DNA of 64,000 nt, taken from positions 1,178,001-1,242,000 of the forward strand of contig OZ251231.1 of the NCBI GenBank assembly GCA_965240325.2. Reading direction: 5' to 3'. Each line of letters starts with the position of its first letter. Positions within the stretch are counted from its first letter, which is position 1. The stretch is from Rebecca billardiae RCC1528 (Eukaryota; Protista; Haptophyta). The notes beneath the pieces are model-generated. The model made no database searches and had not been told where the DNA came from. It saw nothing but the letters and a program-made list of their open reading frames with translations. This document shows positions 21,586 to 42,900 of the stretch, piece after piece. Position numbers and translations under genes: made by a program.

Positions 21586-24500
21586 TTAGGTGTCGTCACC
21601 ACCGCCGGCTTCGGAACTTGTGTCAGCTTCGCCGTCCGCGCGGGCGCCGGCGGCGCCCGCGACACCGTGGCCACCACCGCGCGAGATGTCGCCTGAGCTG
21701 CCGTTGCGATCGCGCGCAGGCAGCGCCGCAGCCTTGGCGGCGTTGGCAGCGCGGCTGCCCCCGCCCAGATTCCTGAGCGCGGTCACGAAGAGCGACGCGA
21801 AAAAGGCGCCAAACGCGCTGTCGCCCTCGGCCTCGAGCGCCAGCCGCGCGGCGCGCGCCGCCGCGTCCTCCTCCCGCTCCCCGTTGCGCTCGCTCGCCGC
21901 CAGCTCGGACGCGCGCTCGATCGCGGGGAGGTACTCGCGGATCGTCCGGTTGAACGGGCCGACGCCCGCGAGCTCGATCACGTCCGTCAGCCGCTTCTCG
22001 ACGGTCTTGCCCTCGTGCTGCGCGTACAGCACGTGGAACGCGTCGAACGCCGAGACGGTCGCGCGCGCCGCGCCCTCGGACGCGCCGCCGACGATCACCG
22101 CCTCCGCCTCCTGCAGCCGTGAGCCGAGCATCCGCCACGCGTACAATTCGACGACCGGCCAGAGCTGCTGCACGAGGGAGGCGCTGCCGAGGACGAGGAG
22201 CCGGCTGCACCGGCCCAGGTACACGAGCTCGTGCGCGAGCTGCTCGGTGGGCAGCAGCGAGTGGTCCTGCGACAGCCCGTCCAGCCAGACGACCGGGCGG
22301 CGGCCATGCTGAACCTCGAACGCGCGCGCCCACTCGCCGAGCGCCGCGACGCGCGCGTCGCGCGGGTCGCGGTGGCAGTGGACAACAAACGCGTCCGCGC
22401 GCGGCGCGTGGCTGAGGAGGTCGGCCTCGTCCGCGCCCTCCGTGCTGGCGGCGGCGGGCGCGCGCGAGAACGCTTCGGAGCGGTGCCGAGCCTGCAGCCG
22501 CGCGCGCGCGGCGATCAGCCTACTGGCCGTCGAGCTCTCCTGCTGCCGCTGCTCCGACGACGACAAGAGCACGGCGCCGCGCGGCGCGTGCGTCGCCGAC
22601 CAGGAAGGCGGGTGCATCAGCCCAGACGAGACGGTGCGCACGCGCCGCGTGTCCGAGAGCGAGAAGGGCATCGCGCCGCTCGCGAGCAGCCCGAGCGCCA
22701 CGTCGTCGAGGGCCACGGGGAGGAAGGACATGGCCGCCTCCAGAACGAGCGCGCGCGGCTCGACTTCGCCTGACACGACGCCGTAGCCCAGCAGGGGCGC
22801 GAGCGAGGCCTCGGGGCCGCCCGAGCGGAGCGCGCGCGCGAGCACCGCCTGCGCCTGCTCGCGCGAGCGGGTGCGCACCACCGCCGGGCCGATCAGCAGC
22901 CCCACCGCCACGCTGCACGCGACCACCACGAACAGCCCAAGGGGCCTCTGCGCCGCCATCCCCGACTCGAGCGTCCACACCAGAATGTTCAAGTCCAGTA
23001 GCGCGCTCAGGAGGATGTAGAGACCAGCGGCTACCCACGTGGCGCGCAGCAGCACGCGCGCGCTGTGCCAGTGCCGCACGATCGCGACGAGCAGCGCCGA
23101 CCACAGCCCGATGTTCTGCAGCACGCGCACCGCGTAGTGCGCGGTCCACACGCCCCGGTAGAAGCGCCCGTCGCGCTTCGGGTCCGCTTCTGAGAAGGTG
23201 TCTTGGTAGCCCTCGTCGCCCGCCACCGCGGCCAGGTTGTCTACGTGAGGAAGGCTGACGATCCAGCAGAGCAGGATCGGCGCGAGCGCGACCATGCGGA
23301 TGCGGACGATCTGCGAGTCCGTCGGCACGAGCGAGAGCAGCATGCAGACGACTGAGGCCTGCCGCCACGCGCGCGCCGGGACGGGGCGGCCAGTCGGAGG
23401 CGCGGAGGGCGGGCGTTCGCGTGGTGCGTTGTCAGCGTGAGCGGCGGGGCGGGGCGGAGCGCGGGGCGCACGCGAGCGCGCGGGCCCGTCGGCTCGCGCA
23501 CCTGCCCGCCCAGCAGGTACACGTGCGTGCGGATCGCGTAGCCGTCGTACATGTCGTAGATCACAGAAGCAGACACGCCGGGGTTCACAGCGAGCAGGGC
23601 GCTTGTCTCGAGTGCGTAGCTCGCGCTGCAAGCGACGAGCACGATGATGCCTGCGGTGAGCGTGGCCAGGGCGATGGACATCTGCCGCCGGCGCGCGCCG
23701 CCCAGCGCCGCGTCGAAGCGCGCGCACAGCTCGTCGTACCCCATCGCGCACGCGTGCAGCTCGCTCGAGCCCGGCCGGACCGGCTCCAGCAGCCGCTCGC
23801 GCACCGGCGGCCGCGCCGCGGCCGCGGCGGGGCTGTCGAGCGGAAGATCTCGCCAGCGGCGCGTGTGCCCGCGCGGCGGCGCGGCCGCGTGCGCGGCCGA
23901 GCGCGGGGCGGCGTCGTCTGCTGCGCCGCGCGCGGAGCCGTCGGCGCCCCCGCGCGCGCCCGCCTGCTGCCAACTCGCGCCCGATGCTGTCGGCGCGCGC
24001 GCGGCCGCGCCAACGCAGGGCGCCAGCAGTCGAGTCCCAAGCCCGGCCGCGCGCGGCCGCGCGCTCAGCGGCCCGCCGTCTCCGCTCGCCGCGCGCGTCG
24101 CGTTCACGACGTCGTGGTACACGTCCCTGAGCAGGTTGAGCACGTGGTTCACGTCGATCATGTGCGCCGCGTCGAGGAAGAGCCAGTGCGTCGTGCCGCC
24201 GCCCGGCGCCTCGTCCGGCGCGCGGCGCGGGAACCTCCGCGCGTGCGCTCGCAGCGCCGACGCATCGGCGGTCGGTTCCACCGCTCTCGCTGCCGAGGCG
24301 AACACCGAGAAATGGTGCGCTGTCTCCGGCAGCACGGTCATCAGCGCGAGGACTGCAGGGGCGTGCGCGCGCGCGGGCGGCGCGCGCGGCGTGGGCGTGC
24401 GTGAGCGCGCGGGCGCGAGCCGCGCCCAGGCCATGACGGCGCGGCGCGCGGCCGGTGCCCCCGTGCGCGCTCGCGCGGCGCAGCGCTCAGCGCGCGCAGA

Positions 24501-26075
24501 CGGGCCTGGCCTGTCGTGTGTTGGGCGCGCGGAGCTGGGCGCGCACCGTCGTACGGCTTGACGAAGCTGCGCGCCGCGCGCCGCGCACGCGCGCCGTGGC
24601 GGGAGGGCGGGTGCGCGCGCGTGTCACACTGCAAGCTCGCCGGGCCCCGCGCCCAGCACGCGCGCACGCGCGCGCGCGCGCTGCGTGCACCCATTCAGAT
24701 ATTCTACAATGTCGGCCGTCGGGCCGAGCCTGCCGAGCCGCCTCGCCTTGAACTCGGCGGGCCCGACGCCGCAGAACGTCTCGAAGTACCACTGCTTCGT
24801 GCAGCGCGCGGGCAGCTTGCCGCCGCACAGCTTCTTCCACAGCCCCTCCAGCCCGAGGAACTGCGCATCTGAGAGATAGCGCATCACAGGGCAGTCGGTG
24901 CGCTCGGCGAACGATCGCGCGAGCTGCATCGGCAGCAGCGGCACCGCGTGGCGCGAGACGACCTGCAGCTGCAAGCCGCGGCTGAGGCACGTGTGGTACA
25001 CGTACGCGGCCGCTTCCATGTCGAACTGCGTGCGTGGCGCGGCGGCGCATCAGCGTGGCGCGGCGGCGCAGCGTGGCGCGGCGGAGCATCAGCGCGGCGC
25101 GGCGGCGCAGCGCGGGGCAGCGGGCGCGGGCCCCGTGCACAGGAGGAATGGGCGCGACCATTCTTGTGTAGGAAAACAGGTCTCAGCGAGCCTCCGCGCG
25201 CACGCCCACACAGGCGCGCGCCGGGGCGCGGCACGCGTGCACAGGTGCACGGGCTGCATCGCTGCACGCGCGCACGCGCACGCCAGCGCGCCCGGCCGTG
25301 GCGCAATGCCGCAGCGGCAGCCATCGTCCCGCCTCACCGTGTTGTTCACGCTCGTGTCGGGCACCCAGCCGAAGGGCGCGCTCGGGTCGGGCGCGAGGCC
25401 GCCCTGCACCGAGACGGCGCGCACGCGCGAGAAGGCCAGGTCCGGCCGCGCCTCCATCACGTCGGCCAGGTCCCGCAGCGAAGAGATGCACACGACGTAC
25501 ACGCTGCGCGCCGCGCTCGACTCGAGCGCGCGCACGAGCAGCGAGTGGCCGTGGTAGAGCTGCTCGTCGCGCACCGCGTCGTAGCCGGGGAGGCGGTACT
25601 CGTGCGGCTGGGGCGTGTACACCTGCGACCCCTCCGAGCCAATGCCCACCGGCACGTCCGTGACGCCCACGTGGTTGAGCAGGCATTGCGCGAGCCGTGC
25701 GCGCGCAAGCGCTTGCTTCCCGCCGTTGGCCACCACGGCCTTTAGGAGTAGCCGGCGGCGGCGGTGGAGCATGGCGGCCACGAGGATCGCCTGCAGACGG
25801 GGGGTGCGCGGGCGCGGCGGCGCAGATGAGCAATGGGTCCGTGCTCGCCGCGGGCCAACCCCGGCCCACGGCGGGCTCGCCGCGCTCGCCGTGGCGACGG
25901 CACATCGCGGCACCTTGACATCGTCGGGGTCTGGCCCTGGATCCGTGATGAGGATGAGCGATCTACGCTTGCGCTCCGCGATCGGGTTGAGCCATCCTCG
26001 CGAGGATAGCGCCTCGCTGATCTGCGAGCGGTGCGAGCCCGAGTCCCGTCGAGCCTCTCCCGCACCCGGCGCCAT
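21586..26075 (-). CDS. Nucleoside hydrolase (IU-NH)-like + multi-TM + TIR-like fusion, ~1197 aa; exons 26075-25914, 25790-25338, 25025-24691, 24566-24547, 24352-23502, 23358-21586
   Basis: ILITDPGPDPDD (NH aspartate cluster), VPVGIG, NNTFD and PYDVLAL, the last built across a 20-bp micro-exon. About 5-6 hydrophobic segments follow, then ADAFVVHCH...VVWLD...YLGRCSRLLVL...LWPVVELY (TIR-like). All five introns are GT-AG and phase-consistent; exon total 3594 nt. Confidence 0.8.
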
Positions 26076-26193: not shown

Positions 26194-27891
26194 TCATACA
26201 CTAGCCATGCCGTGCGCGGCGCGTCGGCTCCCAGGCGCTCGGGGCCCGCTCCGGCTCCCGCGACAGACGCAGTGCGTGCGCGTGCTCAGCTGGCACACGC
26301 CCAGCGCGTACAGCGCTCCCAGTGCCAGCAGGAAGGCGGCGCTGCCCGGCCCGCTCGCGAGCGCGGGCTCGACTCCGCGCGTCACGGCAGGGTGAAGGCG
26401 AGCACCGCGCTCCGCCTGCAGCCCGGTGATGGTGCCGGCTGCCGCGCCCGCGCCCGGCTGGTCTTGCCACAGGGCACGCTCGCGCGCGCGGTCGGCTCCC
26501 ACGTAGCGGGCCCAGCGCACCCTGTCTGTGCGCGCGCCGCCGCCGGCGTCCGCCTCCGCGTCCGCTCTCGGCCAGCCGCCCTCGTCCGCTCCCTCCTCGC
26601 CCTCGTCGTCCTCCTCGTCGTACTCCCACGCCGCGCCGTCTCTCCCAGAGTCCTCCCACAGCACCGGCAGCTCGGCCACAACGGCCGCGCCGGCGGACTG
26701 CTGCTGGCTCGTCGCCCGAGCAGTGGCGCTGAGTGGCGGGAGGGCAAGTGGCATCCAAACCAGCTCGCACACGCCCTCGCCGCCGCCGGGGCAGCGGCCC
26801 TCACGCAGGTTGGTCTCCCAGAGAAGGCCGACTTCGGCGGAGCGGTTGCCCACCGCCGGCGGCGGGATCGCGAAGAGCGACGAGTAGCCGAACGTGCGCG
26901 CCCTGTGCGACACACGTGCGAGCGGCTGCCATGACGCGCCATCGTCGGCCGACGCCATGATCAGCCCGCCGACGCGGCCGAGCCGGTTCGCCGCGCCGCG
27001 GTTCACATTTCCCGGGTTGGAGAAGAGCAGCGGGCCGGTCGGGCGGAGGCGGACGAGGGAAGCTGAGCACGCCGGCTCGAGCAGCGCGGGCTCGCGCCGC
27101 AGCGGGCCGAACGTCGCGCCCCCGTCCGTCGACTCCGCGAGCGCGCGGCACTCGCACCGATGCTTGTGCTCCTTCGTGCGCATGGACGCGAGCACTCGGC
27201 CATCGCTCAGCTCGGTGAGCGTGCCTTCGTCCACGCCCGGGCCGAAGCGGAGGAGCCTGCCCGTGCGCGCGTCGCGCGAGGGCGTGTACGTGCGCCCGCC
27301 GTCGTCGGAGAACCACACGACGTCGTACGAGTAGGCTGGCTGCTGATGCCCAATCCACAGGAGCCGGTGCGGGGCGGCCGCGTGCCGCGCGCTCAGCGCG
27401 AGCCCCGGCGAGGGCCCGACGAATGTGGGCAGCTTGAAGAGTCGCGGGAAGTCGACGGGCGTCGACCACGAGGCGCCCAGGTCGATGGACGCCACCTGCG
27501 CATTCATGTACCGCTTCGCCTCGAGCTGCCAGTTGAACTGCAGCAGCAGGCGGCGAGAGCTGACGTCGTAGACCGGTGAGGGCTGAGACGCGCACTCGGC
27601 GACGAGGCGCACCGGGCCCCACGTGCGCCCGCCGTCGTCAGAGATCTTGAGCACAATGTCCGTCGTGAGCGCACACGCCTGGTCCCCAGGCTTCTCGTCG
27701 CTGCGCGCCCCAGCGCCGCTCGCTGAGACCTCGCAGAAGTCCCCTCCCCACTGCCTCGCCTCAGCGAACGCGAGCACCCTGCGCGATGCGGTGATGACGA
27801 CGGGGATGCGAAAGCACGGGTACGTCTTGCGCCAGCCATCGCCGGCGTCAGCCCTCTCGTTGGGCTCGAAGACGATCTCAGGCACGCCCAT
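26194..27891 (-). CDS. Sialidase/neuraminidase-like (GH33) with C-terminal TM anchor
   Basis: FRIP motif, AFAEAR, Asp-boxes SDDGGRTW, SIDLGASW, SDDGGRTY, STDGGATF and ADDGASW, GYSSL, hydrophobic tail. Confidence 0.9.
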   Translation of the reverse strand: MGVPEIVFEPNERADAGDGWRKTYPCFRIPVVITASRRVLAFAEARQWGGDFCEVSASGAGARSDEKPGDQACALTTDIVLKISDDGGRTWGPVRLVAECASQPSPVYDVSSRRLLLQFNWQLEAKRYMNAQVASIDLGASWSTPVDFPRLFKLPTFVGPSPGLALSARHAAAPHRLLWIGHQQPAYSYDVVWFSDDGGRTYTPSRDARTGRLLRFGPGVDEGTLTELSDGRVLASMRTKEHKHRCECRALAESTDGGATFGPLRREPALLEPACSASLVRLRPTGPLLFSNPGNVNRGAANRLGRVGGLIMASADDGASWQPLARVSHRARTFGYSSLFAIPPPAVGNRSAEVGLLWETNLREGRCPGGGEGVCELVWMPLALPPLSATARATSQQQSAGAAVVAELPVLWEDSGRDGAAWEYDEEDDEGEEGADEGGWPRADAEADAGGGARTDRVRWARYVGADRARERALWQDQPGAGAAAGTITGLQAERGARLHPAVTRGVEPALASGPGSAAFLLALGALYALGVCQLSTRTHCVCRGSRSGPRAPGSRRAAHGMASV

Positions 27892-39470: not shown

Positions 39471-42400
39471 ATGCTGTCCGCGCTCTTCAGCGGCCCAGTG
39501 CGTGTGGACGAGGTGTACGCGCCGCTCTTTGAGGGCAACAAGCGGCACCACGGCTGCTCAGTCACTCAGATCGAGAAGCGGGGCGTCACGCTCGCGCAGC
39601 TGCGGCGCGCGTGCAAATACACCCTAGGGCGCGCGATTGCGGAGCGGTGGACGTCAGTGGCGCCGGAGAGGCGAGGCCAGCCGCTGACGGAGGAGAATCT
39701 GACGCTGAACGACTTCGTGCAGCTGGTCGTCCTTCCCGCCACCGCCCGGCGCGACTGCTCCTTTGTCGAGCTCGTTGCAACCAAGCCGCAGCCGCCTCGC
39801 TGGCTCGTGTCGGTGTGGGGCGGGCAGCCACTGGCGGAGGTCGTCGCGTGCCTCGAGCAGCACGTGAACGACCACCGCGATCTGAGCGAGGACGACGCGT
39901 ACTGGGTGCGCCGCGCCACGCGTGCCGCTGCCGCGCCGTGCCCCGCCTCCGCCCGCCAGCGCGCAGCTGGGCCGCATACGCCCGCGAGCTCACCCCACGC
40001 CCGCGCGCACACCGCACACCGCGCGCGCGGCTCGCGGTGCGGTTGGTGCGTGCAGGTGTACGCGTGCGCGGCGAACCCGCGGGAGCAGGCCTCCGAGCTC
40101 CCGCGCGCGCTGACCGTGCGCGACCTCGCCTTCCACCGCGTCATGTCCAGCGTGGAGGGCGCGGTCACGCTGCTCGACCGGCAGGGGACGGCTCTCTCGG
40201 CGCGCGCGTGGTGCGCGCTCGAGCTGTACGAGGCGACGCACTCGCGCGGCGTCGACCTGAAGCACGAGGTGTACACCGCGGTGCAGCAGGGCGACGACGA
40301 CGACGACCAGTTCCCCGCCGACGACGCGCCGGCCGTCGGCCTGACCGACGGCTACGCTGCGTTCGACCTCGGCAGCGCCGCAACCAAGGCGCGGCGCGAG
40401 CGCGCATTCCCCGCCCTTCTTGCTTCTCGCGCGCTCGACTTTAAGCTCGAGGCGGCGCAGGCGGCGTCGGAGGAGGACCGCGAGGGGATCGTCGGGCTCG
40501 TCGGCGACGACGCCGGCCCGTTCAACTCCACCGTGCGCGCGCGCGTCGGCGCCGCCCTGCTCGTCCGATGGCTGGACGACATCGCGGCCGGCCACCGCAC
40601 CGGCATCGTTCAACTCGCGCCGAGCGCAAGTGCCGCGAGCCTGGGCGGCGGCAGCCGGCGCTCGAGCGGCGGCAGCTACGCGAGCAGCAGCGGCGGCGGC
40701 GGCGGCGGGCTCTTCACCCCGTGCGGCGCGCGCGCGCGCTCGCGGCTGCCCCCGGACGCCGCCCCGCTGCTCGGCCCGACCCTCGCCAACCTGAAGGCCT
40801 CGCACCTGCGCAAGCTCGAGGTGATCCGGGCAGACGCAGACAAGCCGGTCGGCGGCTCTCTCCTTTCGCCCAACCTGCCGAGCACGCTGGAGGAGCTCCG
40901 GCTGCGCGGCGTGAGCGCGGAGGTGGCGCACGGCGCGGCGCGGCTGCTCCGCCTCGCCGACCTCCGAGTCCTCCAGCTCCACTCGTGCGCGCTCGACGAC
41001 CGCTCCGCCGAGCAGATGGGCAAGGCGGTGCTGAACAACGGAAGCCTGCGCGAGCTCGATCTCGCGGGCAACGCGATCGGCGACGCCGGCATGCGCGCGC
41101 TCGGCGCGGGACTGCAGCGGTGCAGGCGGCTCGCGCTCGTCGACCTCTCGTGCGCGCGCGCGCGCGCATCGCGCGCCGCGCCCGTGTGCGTGGCGCCCTG
41201 CGCGCGCGCGCTGCGCTCGCTGCGGCCACACGGCTGCCGGCTGTGACGCTGCCTGTGCATACACCGCGCGCGGGCGCGCGCCGTGTGCCATCGCGCGCCG
41301 CTCGTCGGCCGCGGCGCCAGGGCGAATCGCATCTCGGACAACGGCGCCGCCGCCCTGGCGCAAGTCCTCACCGGCTGCAAAACCGTGCGCGTGCTTGACC
41401 TGAGGTGCGCGCCGAGACTGCCGCGCCGCGCGCCAAGCTCGGCCGCACTGCGCGGCGCGTGTGTCGTTCTTGCGCGCGGCTCCGGAGGGCAGGCAGAGCC
41501 CGGGGCGCCGCCGCGCGGACGCCGACCGGGCTGGCGCTGGCCTCGCCATGTGCTGCGCTGCGCGCGCGGCGATCTGTGCACTCGGCGGGGGCATGCGCCC
41601 GTCGAGCTGGATCTCACGCCCCAAGCTCCCGCCCGCCCTCCCGCCGCCCACCCGCCCGCCCGCCCGCCCGTGCGCCCCGCCCGCGCGCCCGCCTCCGCCC
41701 CGCGCGCCGCGCGCCGCGCGCCACAAGCTCCAACCGGATCGGGGACACGGGCGTGACCGCGCTGGCGCAGGGCGTGTCTGCGAGCAAGAAGCTCTTCGAG
41801 CTACAGCTGAGGTGTGCTTTGCGCGCGGCGCGGATCGCGCGGCGCACGCCGCGCACGCCGCGCGCACGCGCGAGGGCGTCCACTGGCCACCGTCTCCTCC
41901 GGCACCGGCGCGCTCGGCGCTGCCAAGCGTGTTACGCGTGTGCGAGCGTGCCGCGCCCCTGCTGCGCCGCACCGCCATGCTGCCCTGTGCGCCCACGCCG
42001 CCCGGTGCGGCGCAGCGACAACAAGCTGACAGACAGGGGCGTCGCCGCGATTGCGTCCGCGCTGACCAAGGCGAAGGCGCTGGCGATCCTCGGCCTCAGG
42101 TGAGCCACGCGCGACACGCCGTCCGCCGCCCGCGGCCGCGCGGCTGCGCAGCCGTGGCACCGCGGCCATTGATCGATCCTCGCCCCGCTGACCTCTGCCG
42201 CGCCCGCGCGCCCGCGCGAATCGGCCGCGCCGCCCAGCCACAACTCGATCGGCGACGGCGCAGCCAATGCCCTTGGAGAAGCGCTGCTCAAGCGCACCGC
42301 GCTCTCGGCTCTGTTTCTCGAGTGCGCGCCGTCGGCCGTGCCGTGCCGTGCGCGCCCCCAGCAAGCACGAGCGCCGCGCCGCGCGAGGCCGCGCGCGTCC

Positions 42401-42900
42401 AGCTGCCGTGCTGCCGTGCGCACTCGGCGCGGGCGGCACGCGCCGCACTCACGCCCCCCGCCCGCGCGCCTGCCGCCTGCCTCCACCGCCACCAGCGGCA
42501 ACCGGATCACGGACGACGGCTCGCGGCTGCTCACACGCGGCCTGGTGAAGAACCGCACGCTGCGGACGCTCTACATTCAGTGCGCGCGCCCGCGCGCCGC
42601 GTCCACGCCGCGCGTGGACGTGGGGCGTGGGCTATGCCCCCTGCCTGCCGCGAAGGGCCTGGTTGCTTGCCTGCCGCGAAGGGCCGGCTGCGATCGATCA
42701 GCACGCGCACCGCGCTGCGCTCTGACCGCCGCGGGCGCGTGCGTTCCCCTGCGCGGCGCAGGACCAACGCGCTGACTGACGAGGGGGTCATGGAGATCCG
42801 GGCGGTCTGGGATGAGACTGGCCGGAACAACATGATCAGCAATGGGCGGAGCTCCGATGCCATGCCAGCGCGCGGCGGGCAGCGGGGGCTGCTGGTGTGA
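39471..42900 (+). CDS. TIR/HET-like N-terminal domain + RNI-type LRR protein; exons 39471-39905, 40056-41149, 41321-41404, 41728-41811, 42016-42099, 42238-42321, 42496-42579, 42762-42900
   Basis: SFVEL..PRWLVSVWGGQP..YW|VYACAAN..RAWCALELY; five consecutive 84-bp exons each encode one LRR (xNxIxDxG...LxL) with GT-AG boundaries. Confidence 0.85.

Follow-up and report, generated by a model that had tools for sequence, protein, structure and literature searches.

TIR domains produce immune signals derived from nicotinamide adenine dinucleotide (NAD) in bacteria, plants and animals. Here, we analyzed a 64,000-nt stretch of the genome of the haptophyte Rebecca billardiae RCC1528 (contig OZ251231.1, positions 1,178,001 to 1,242,000 of the forward strand; the whole stretch is called the window below). 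On its minus strand lies a gene that appears to fuse a nucleoside hydrolase-like domain, a block of membrane helices and a TIR-fold domain.

Four described systems come closest to this protein. The first is the XopQ/HopQ1 family of secreted type III effectors from plant-pathogenic bacteria. The hallmark of the HopQ1 family is a DXXXDXDD motif in place of DXDXXXDD, and an Asn and a Tyr-Asp pair are listed as ribose and substrate contacts of HopQ1 (PMC3608555). HopQ1/XopQ were inactive in tests on standard nucleosides (PMC3608555; preprint 10.64898/2026.06.15.732069). The same preprint reports that XopQ/HopQ1 hydrolyze the TIR product 2'-cyclic ADP-ribose (2'cADPR) to ADP-ribose (ADPR) with near diffusion-limited efficiency, that XopQ D120N is catalytically inactive and that a D120N/D399N double mutant was also used (10.64898/2026.06.15.732069). 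In the XopQ structure 4p5f, the crystal contains bound ADPR. HopQ1-like proteins (HLP) are known in algae, haptophytes included, in an account that does not mention fusions to TIR domains or membrane segments (PMC6019455). The second system is the enzymatically active TIR domains, and the third is fungal HET, a remote TIR homologue whose chemistry is undescribed (PMC10890737). Lastly, a study of another haptophyte, Gephyrocapsa huxleyi, describes TIR genes with N-terminal membrane helices that respond to virus infection (PMC12489294).

Structure of the fusion gene

A manual rebuild from the sequence gave six exons and five GT-AG introns on the minus strand between 26075 and 21586. The exons total 3594 nt, or 1197 codons plus a TAA stop, with a 20-nt micro-exon included. 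Their positions and those of the encoded domains are as follows.

Exon 1, 26075-25914, minus strand: 162 nt, 54 codons; ATG start; HopQ1-type motif D45-x3-D49-x-D51-D52 at 25943-25920
Exon 2, 25790-25338, minus strand: 453 nt, 151 codons; core of the nucleoside-hydrolase fold; ends in S-V-N-N-T with the equivalent of the ribose-contact Asn
Exon 3, 25025-24691, minus strand: 335 nt, 111 codons plus 2 nt; second half of the hydrolase domain
Exon 4 (micro-exon), 24566-24547, minus strand: 20 nt encoding (G)FVKPYD(V); the Tyr-Asp pair is the equivalent of HopQ1 Y383/D384 and of XopQ D399
Exon 5, 24352-23502, minus strand: 851 nt, 2 nt plus 283 codons; end of the hydrolase domain, Ala/Arg/Pro-rich linker, helix 1 and the first half of helix 2
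Exon 6, 23358-21586, minus strand: 1773 nt, 590 codons plus TAA; helices 2b-6, linker, TIR-fold domain and low-complexity tail
Membrane block, 23681-22864, minus strand: six helices predicted by hydropathy and a paralog model, broken by intron 5 (23501-23359), with helix 2 across the junction of exons 5 and 6
Membrane helix 1, about 23681-23613, minus strand: in exon 5, predicted by hydropathy
TIR-fold domain, 22440-21901, minus strand: residues about 914-1093; putative catalytic Glu1011 (codon 22149-22147) in W-P-V-V-E-L

All five introns start with GTG and end with GCAG, and the codons split at the junctions are GG/C (Gly) and G/TC (Val). The acceptor of intron 5 was placed at 23360-23359 because the reading frame requires an AG there. 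GC content was higher in the introns (0.78-0.85, with no exon-type periodicity) than in the exons (0.60-0.76), and the exons had a GC content of 0.90-1.00 at third codon positions (GC3; 0.76 in exon 1) and ∼0.5 at second positions. Introns 1 and 2 have lengths that are multiples of three; intron 1 is also free of in-frame stops, so its retention would merely add 41 residues. The coding sequence has neither stops nor frameshifts, and the DNA of the window is eukaryotic with a GC content of 0.56-0.77. We found the locus in one public contig alone (Logan ERR14847148), which is unspliced genomic DNA and 100% identical to the window.

To compare the gene with its relatives, we searched each exon individually by tblastn against 16 paralogous loci of the R. 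billardiae genome. Two of these, L028 (contig 21, 1267-codon open frame) and L036 (contig 18), are free of introns and run in one frame through the equivalents of all five junctions (DPDDxK-ALL, SVNNGFD, LxGFVKPYDVLALM and HVY..LVQAG..), including the GFVKPYDV of the micro-exon. L028, which is 34-71% identical per exon, was used as the continuous proxy for the fusion protein. Intron 4 alone occurs at the same site in paralogs L030, L035 and L037, and intron 3 alone at the same site in L038; nine other paralogs have neither intron, and the window gene has both. Since each flanking intron is seen singly in paralogs, the micro-exon is explained. Moreover, a related transcript open reading frame (ORF) from MMETSP (P0005, 1054 residues) carries the hydrolase at 34-183 and the TIR-like domain at 884-1046, which implies that in a relative the two end domains share one mRNA. 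The sequence-only reading of this DNA had joined four apparently separate ORFs into a frame of about 1197 residues through five GT-AG introns and a 20-bp micro-exon. This assembly was borne out by both the rebuild and the paralogs, and the motifs quoted in its favor were all located, TDPGPDPDD in exon 1, YD-VLA across the junction of exons 4 and 5 and WPVVE in exon 6. Taken together, the exon structure and the paralog alignments give good support for one intact gene that encodes a polytopic membrane protein of roughly 1197 residues.

The three parts of the encoded protein

The N-terminal domain had been described as similar to inosine-uridine (IU) nucleoside hydrolases. In Pfam scans of the separate exons, exon 2 matched PF01156 with an E value of 5e-5 and 23.5 bits, which is under the gathering score of 34.2, and neither the membrane block nor the TIR part had a match; the gathering score was passed by the intron-free paralog (42.7 bits) and by P0020 (48 bits). 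Matches to structures in the PDB pointed to XopQ, weakly for exon 2 (E 0.06) and as the sole matches for exon 3 (E 1.6e-5), exons that are 55-61% and 65-72% identical to those of paralogs, respectively. When the hydrolase part of the paralog was used as the query, XopQ (7jlu_B, 4kl0 and 4p5f) was found at E 2e-24, compared with 5e-6 or worse for classical hydrolases. In an AlphaFold2 (AF2) model of L028, residues 6-388 mostly had a predicted local distance difference test score (pLDDT) above 90. XopQ 4p5f was the top Foldseek match of this model (E 3e-14, template modeling (TM) score 0.72-0.75), and in an exhaustive VIA search XopQ reached Z 36.1 with 328 residues aligned, as opposed to 27.2 for the next enzyme.

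The residues that define the HopQ1 family are also in place. The window protein keeps the non-canonical DXXXDXDD as T-D-P-G-P-D-P-D-D (25943-25920), and the equivalents of HopQ1 N265 and Y383/D384 are found in the S-V-N-N at the end of exon 2 and in the K-P-Y-D of the micro-exon. This set is near-invariant over the hydrolase-TIR family. The position of HopQ1 A263 is occupied by Ser, and XopQ D120 and D399 correspond to Asp49 and to Asp323 of the micro-exon when 81 is added to the chain index. Alignments and models thus give good support for placing the N-terminal domain in the HopQ1/XopQ group, whose residues for calcium, ribose and substrate it retains. The hydrolase assignment of the sequence-only reading stood and could be narrowed to this group, as distinct from classical IU nucleoside hydrolases, given the PDB, Foldseek and VIA matches and the DXXXDXDD motif. 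The algal domain has the nucleoside-hydrolase fold, has XopQ as its best structural and sequence match, and has in common with XopQ/HopQ1 the DXXXDXDD motif, the Asn of A-Y-N-N and the Y-D pair. It differs in being only ∼23-24% identical to XopQ, with a function that is predicted, and in belonging to an endogenous protein with six predicted membrane helices and a TIR-fold domain, whereas the bacterial proteins are secreted effectors.

At the other end of the protein, we modeled the TIR-like domain with AF2 from an alignment of 52 paralog domains (A1) and obtained a pLDDT of 94.7 and a predicted TM score of 0.89. The top 50 Foldseek matches were TIR domains throughout, among them RUN1, SNC1, RPS4, RPP1, SPARTA and MyD88, with probabilities of ∼1 and E values down to 6e-4. 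VIA gave Z 11.0 to 7xoz (136 residues, root-mean-square deviation 3.4), 10.8 to RPP1, 10.6 to RUN1, 10.1 to MyD88 and 10.0 to SARM1, and its matches from Z 11.0 to 8.4 were TIR domains except for one nucleoside 2'-deoxyribosyltransferase at rank 49. Sequence matches in the PDB were merely hints, namely the TIR domains of SIGIRR and TLR15 at E 0.3-0.8 over the WCxxE helix. In these alignments, W-P-V-V-E-L of the window domain falls on WCxYEL of TLR15 and on the WC motif of SIGIRR. In the AF2 model, the Glu lies in a helix (93-104) after strand C (81-85). The window copy retains this Glu, the Trp that precedes it and the W-L-D strand. The TIR-like fold of the sequence-only reading was thus recovered by both structure searches, and the retention of the Glu of WPVVE at the catalytic position is well supported by alignment and model.

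With enzymatic TIR domains (RUN1, RPP1, RPS4, SARM1, AbTir, SPARTA and ThsB), the algal domain has in common a five-strand flavodoxin-like fold (Z 9-11 over 115-140 residues) and a Glu in the helix after strand C within W-x-x-x-E-L. It differs from them in sequence (10-16% identity), has no Pfam TIR match and bears two motifs typical of the HET-like branch, F-V-V-H and W-L-D..D. It also lies C-terminal of a polytopic membrane block, and its NADase role is only predicted. Similarity to fungal HET (PF06985) is seen in divergent paralogs, whose domains bear SHSW..DD and WLDKxCIDQ motifs. More broadly, these paralogs show aromatic-x-S/H-H-x-W..D, W-I/L-D-x-x-C-I-D-Q and R-x-W-x-x-x-E together with weak Pfam matches, and the fungal and algal families are both large, expanded and of the conflict type. 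The window copy itself, however, had no match to Pfam HET (PF06985), its host is an alga and not a fungus, and its partner domains are different. We labeled the C-terminal domain TIR-fold and placed it toward HET within the superfamily, on the basis of the fold matches and of the HET/TIR_2 Pfam pattern in divergent copies; with the fold taken from a model, this assignment is well supported.

The middle of the protein had been read as a multi-helix membrane region, and hydropathy and the paralog model agree on a block of six helices. Per exon, hydropathy indicated one helix in exon 5, four in exon 6 and one hydrophobic stretch divided by intron 5. The L028 model contains six long helices between the end domains with a pLDDT of ∼90, and segments of the window protein align to all six. 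Arg-rich flanks before helix 1, between helices 4 and 5 and after helix 6 fit a topology with both termini inside, and the fusion protein has no signal peptide. With no signal peptide, an even number of helices and positive flanks, both soluble domains should face the cytosol. In the topology prediction suggested along with the sequence-only reading, the hydrolase and TIR domains would thus lie on the same side of the membrane, probably the cytosolic one. A feature search of the ESM Atlas with the membrane block returned nothing usable, and whole-model structure searches, in which the hydrolase domain dominated, assigned it to no known pore or channel fold.

An expanded family in R. billardiae and its relatives

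Within the 72-Mb R. billardiae genome, the TIR-like domain was matched 122 times and the hydrolase exon 84 times. The survey of paralogs suggested earlier yielded at least 55 loci of the same architecture, with the hydrolase followed by the TIR-like domain on one strand and 2.1-5.7 kb apart. Conservation is highest in the hydrolase domain (55-72% identity) and lowest in the linkers and membrane block (25-35%). The window copy is a fully equipped member of this family in that both sets of catalytic residues are intact, and it has the unusual micro-exon in addition. When the genome was searched with the TIR-like domain at E 0.001 or better, window positions 39471-42900 gave no match. Low-complexity candidates dominated a word-index search of proteins with exon 6, from which the window's own fragment alone emerged.

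L028 had 1696 relatives in an exhaustive profile-free search, 165 of them at E 1e-30 or better, and both domains occur in the same order in 29 of the best 150. Among these 29 are hypothetical proteins from Diacronema lutheri and from Pavlovales sp. CCMP2436. Contigs from other samples are just 65-70% identical in DNA to the R. billardiae genome. In the papers that could be searched for nucleoside hydrolases or XopQ/HopQ1 together with TIR domains, haptophytes or algae, the fusion is not described. The earlier remark that this architecture had no description thus holds for the literature searched, but members are already deposited, and the databases hold these fusion proteins solely as hypothetical proteins. 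A scan of viral contigs for relatives of the hydrolase found none, and the TIR alignment was too variable to yield a pattern. This carries little weight either way.

The G. huxleyi TIR genes resemble the R. billardiae fusion in that a Glu-bearing TIR domain comes after membrane helices at the N terminus (PMC12489294). Some have an ectodomain, no hydrolase domain fused to TIR is described, and the listed mentions of hydrolases in that study are glycoside hydrolases in an expression table (PMC12489294).

The two end domains also occur apart. About 65 TIR-like domains of the R. billardiae genome have no linked hydrolase, and many of these have a more HET-like signature (SHSW..DD, WLDKxCIDQ), among them three copies that lie within 9 kb on contig 12 (G000:C12:124893-133596). 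In the ESM Atlas, haptophyte clusters of 282 and 56 members match L028 residues 441-1193, which comprise the membrane block and the TIR domain, without the hydrolase. Conversely, a diatom cluster of 81 members has an IU-type hydrolase domain joined to TPR repeats. Within the R. billardiae genome, a XopQ-like hydrolase is combined with WD40 repeats in a frame of 2228 codons, and in two further proteins a ligand-binding domain of the ANF-receptor or periplasmic-binding type stands N-terminal of the XopQ-like hydrolase. These WD40 and ANF-receptor contexts are receptor-like or NLR-like. The three large hydrolase proteins without TIR, one of the WD40 type and two of the receptor type, are located as follows.

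L093, G000:C23:518000-526500
L094, C15:874000-882500
L095, C12:2171000-2179500

Possible functions of the fusion protein

Our preferred reading, to which we assign a probability of about 0.5, is that this gene encodes a membrane-anchored XopQ-like/TIR protein that makes and breaks an NAD-derived signal and belongs to an immune-type family. Upon oligomerization or another trigger, the TIR domain would cleave NAD+ to a product derived from ADPR. The product, or a ribosyl-linked compound close to it, would then be hydrolyzed by the tethered XopQ-like domain, much as 2'cADPR is reported to be by XopQ. In that case the protein would be anchored in the membrane and would limit the nucleotide signal that it makes by also breaking it down, or it would convert NAD+ to ADPR in two steps; its family would be expanded, fast-diversifying and of the immune type. 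That XopQ is reported to hydrolyze 2'cADPR provides an outside precedent for the proposal that TIR products are processed by the hydrolase domain. We infer the making and breaking of the signal. An immune or signaling role of the gene is likewise what we infer, and an immune or conflict role is supported by the expansion of the family, by the patchy retention and loss of catalytic residues across copies, by the fusion of the hydrolase to WD40 repeats, receptor ectodomains and, in diatoms, TPR repeats, and by the response to virus of membrane-helix TIR genes in another haptophyte (PMC12489294).

Several points weigh against this reading. On the TIR side, the Foldseek TM scores of the window domain to TIR domains are just 0.4-0.5. 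No Pfam model, TIR models included, matched the window domain at E values up to 10, and among the 52 paralog domains HET matched four (best E 0.001) and TIR_2 two (best E 0.0058). The domain lies nearer to the fungal HET branch, where the chemistry is undescribed. Furthermore, the Glu is retained in 31 of the 52 genome copies and lost in the other 21, and this loss in ∼40% of copies suggests that the TIR chemistry is often dispensable. On the hydrolase side, the position of XopQ Tyr279 is Val throughout the hydrolase-TIR family, which suggests that the substrate may differ from 2'cADPR, and the activity of XopQ on 2'cADPR is itself known from a preprint alone (10.64898/2026.06.15.732069). The gene model is known from genomic sequence and paralogs alone, the helix count and topology were taken from the model of a paralog that is 34-71% identical per exon, and the algal family members are characterized from sequence and models. 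Lastly, a signal maker fused to its own breaker is a non-obvious design.

The fusion would matter in several ways. XopQ is newly reported as a pathogen enzyme that erases one TIR signal, and a natural hydrolase-TIR fusion would be the first hint of a host-side role of the XopQ type. It would also be the first hint that TIR-signal chemistry is used by haptophytes, which are major primary producers in the sea and face heavy pressure from viruses, and that one membrane protein can combine the making and the breaking of a signal. Conserved across pavlovophyte species, with ∼55 copies and near-invariant hydrolase active sites, the fusion also offers a pair of recombinant domains that can be tested directly to find the TIR product on which the algal XopQ relative acts. 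More speculatively, and we regard this as doubtful, pavlovophytes might have an endogenous TIR-nucleotide system in which a synthase and a XopQ-type hydrolase are mounted on a six-helix module with a possibly gated output; the XopQ/HopQ1 effectors would then copy a eukaryotic off switch and not be a bacterial invention.

Alternatively, the XopQ-like domain may mainly bind a signal from other TIR proteins and thereby trigger its own TIR NADase and/or the membrane block as a pore or damaging effector, a Thoeris-type logic within a single chain. The at least 65 unlinked TIR-like domains in the genome are possible makers of such a signal, and ADPR is bound in the XopQ crystal 4p5f. In addition, the haptophyte clusters with membrane block and TIR lack the hydrolase, which makes the hydrolase look like an added input module, and this domain is also attached to WD40 repeats and receptor ectodomains. 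However, the near-invariant catalytic set (DXXXDXDD, Asn and Tyr-Asp) suits turnover better than mere binding, and the membrane block has no identified pore or channel fold. We therefore consider a sensor of this kind unlikely, though worth keeping in view.

A role of the C-terminal domain in regulated cell death or in self/non-self recognition, possibly without enzymatic activity, is what kinship to HET would suggest, and the hydrolase would then be an independent effector that degrades nucleosides or nucleotides. Paralog domains match Pfam HET more often than TIR_2, divergent copies carry SHSW..DD and WLDKxCIDQ, the Glu is missing from 21 of the 52 copies, and HET is a documented remote TIR homologue with undescribed chemistry (PMC10890737). 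In the window copy, however, the Glu is intact together with the preceding Trp and the W-L-D strand; the structural neighbors of this domain are TIR domains, enzymatically active ones among them, and the specific kinship of its partner domain to XopQ points to TIR-product chemistry. We consider a HET-type function unlikely for this protein.

A housekeeping role is very unlikely. The N-terminal domain has the fold and the calcium-site residues of nucleoside hydrolases; anchored in the membrane, it might salvage purines or pyrimidines, perhaps together with transport through the membrane block, and the TIR-like domain would be an oligomerization scaffold only. But HopQ1/XopQ were inactive on standard nucleosides, the motif is the non-canonical DXXXDXDD, and a family of ∼55 copies that diverge, and whose linkers and membrane blocks vary (25-35% identity), does not resemble a salvage enzyme. 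Finally, four separate ORF genes, or a decaying pseudogene with chance splice joins, are scarcely credible: the locus is known from genomic DNA alone and is broken by prokaryote-style gene callers into fragments (P0001, 569 residues; P0102, 227 residues), but all five joins are crossed in frame by intron-free paralogs, intron positions are common to paralogs, both domains stand within one related transcript ORF, and the exons have a high GC3 with no stop or frameshift.

Directly upstream of the fusion gene and on the same strand, a 565-codon ORF at window positions 26194-27891 (minus strand) encodes a BNR/sialidase-like beta-propeller (PF13088, E 4e-13) with a C-terminal hydrophobic segment. 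We considered a fusion of this gene to the hydrolase gene and rejected it, as members of the family, including the transcript ORF, begin 20-35 residues before the hydrolase domain. The stop of the BNR ORF and the ATG of the fusion gene are 118 nt apart, so the untranslated regions of the two genes must overlap or be very short.

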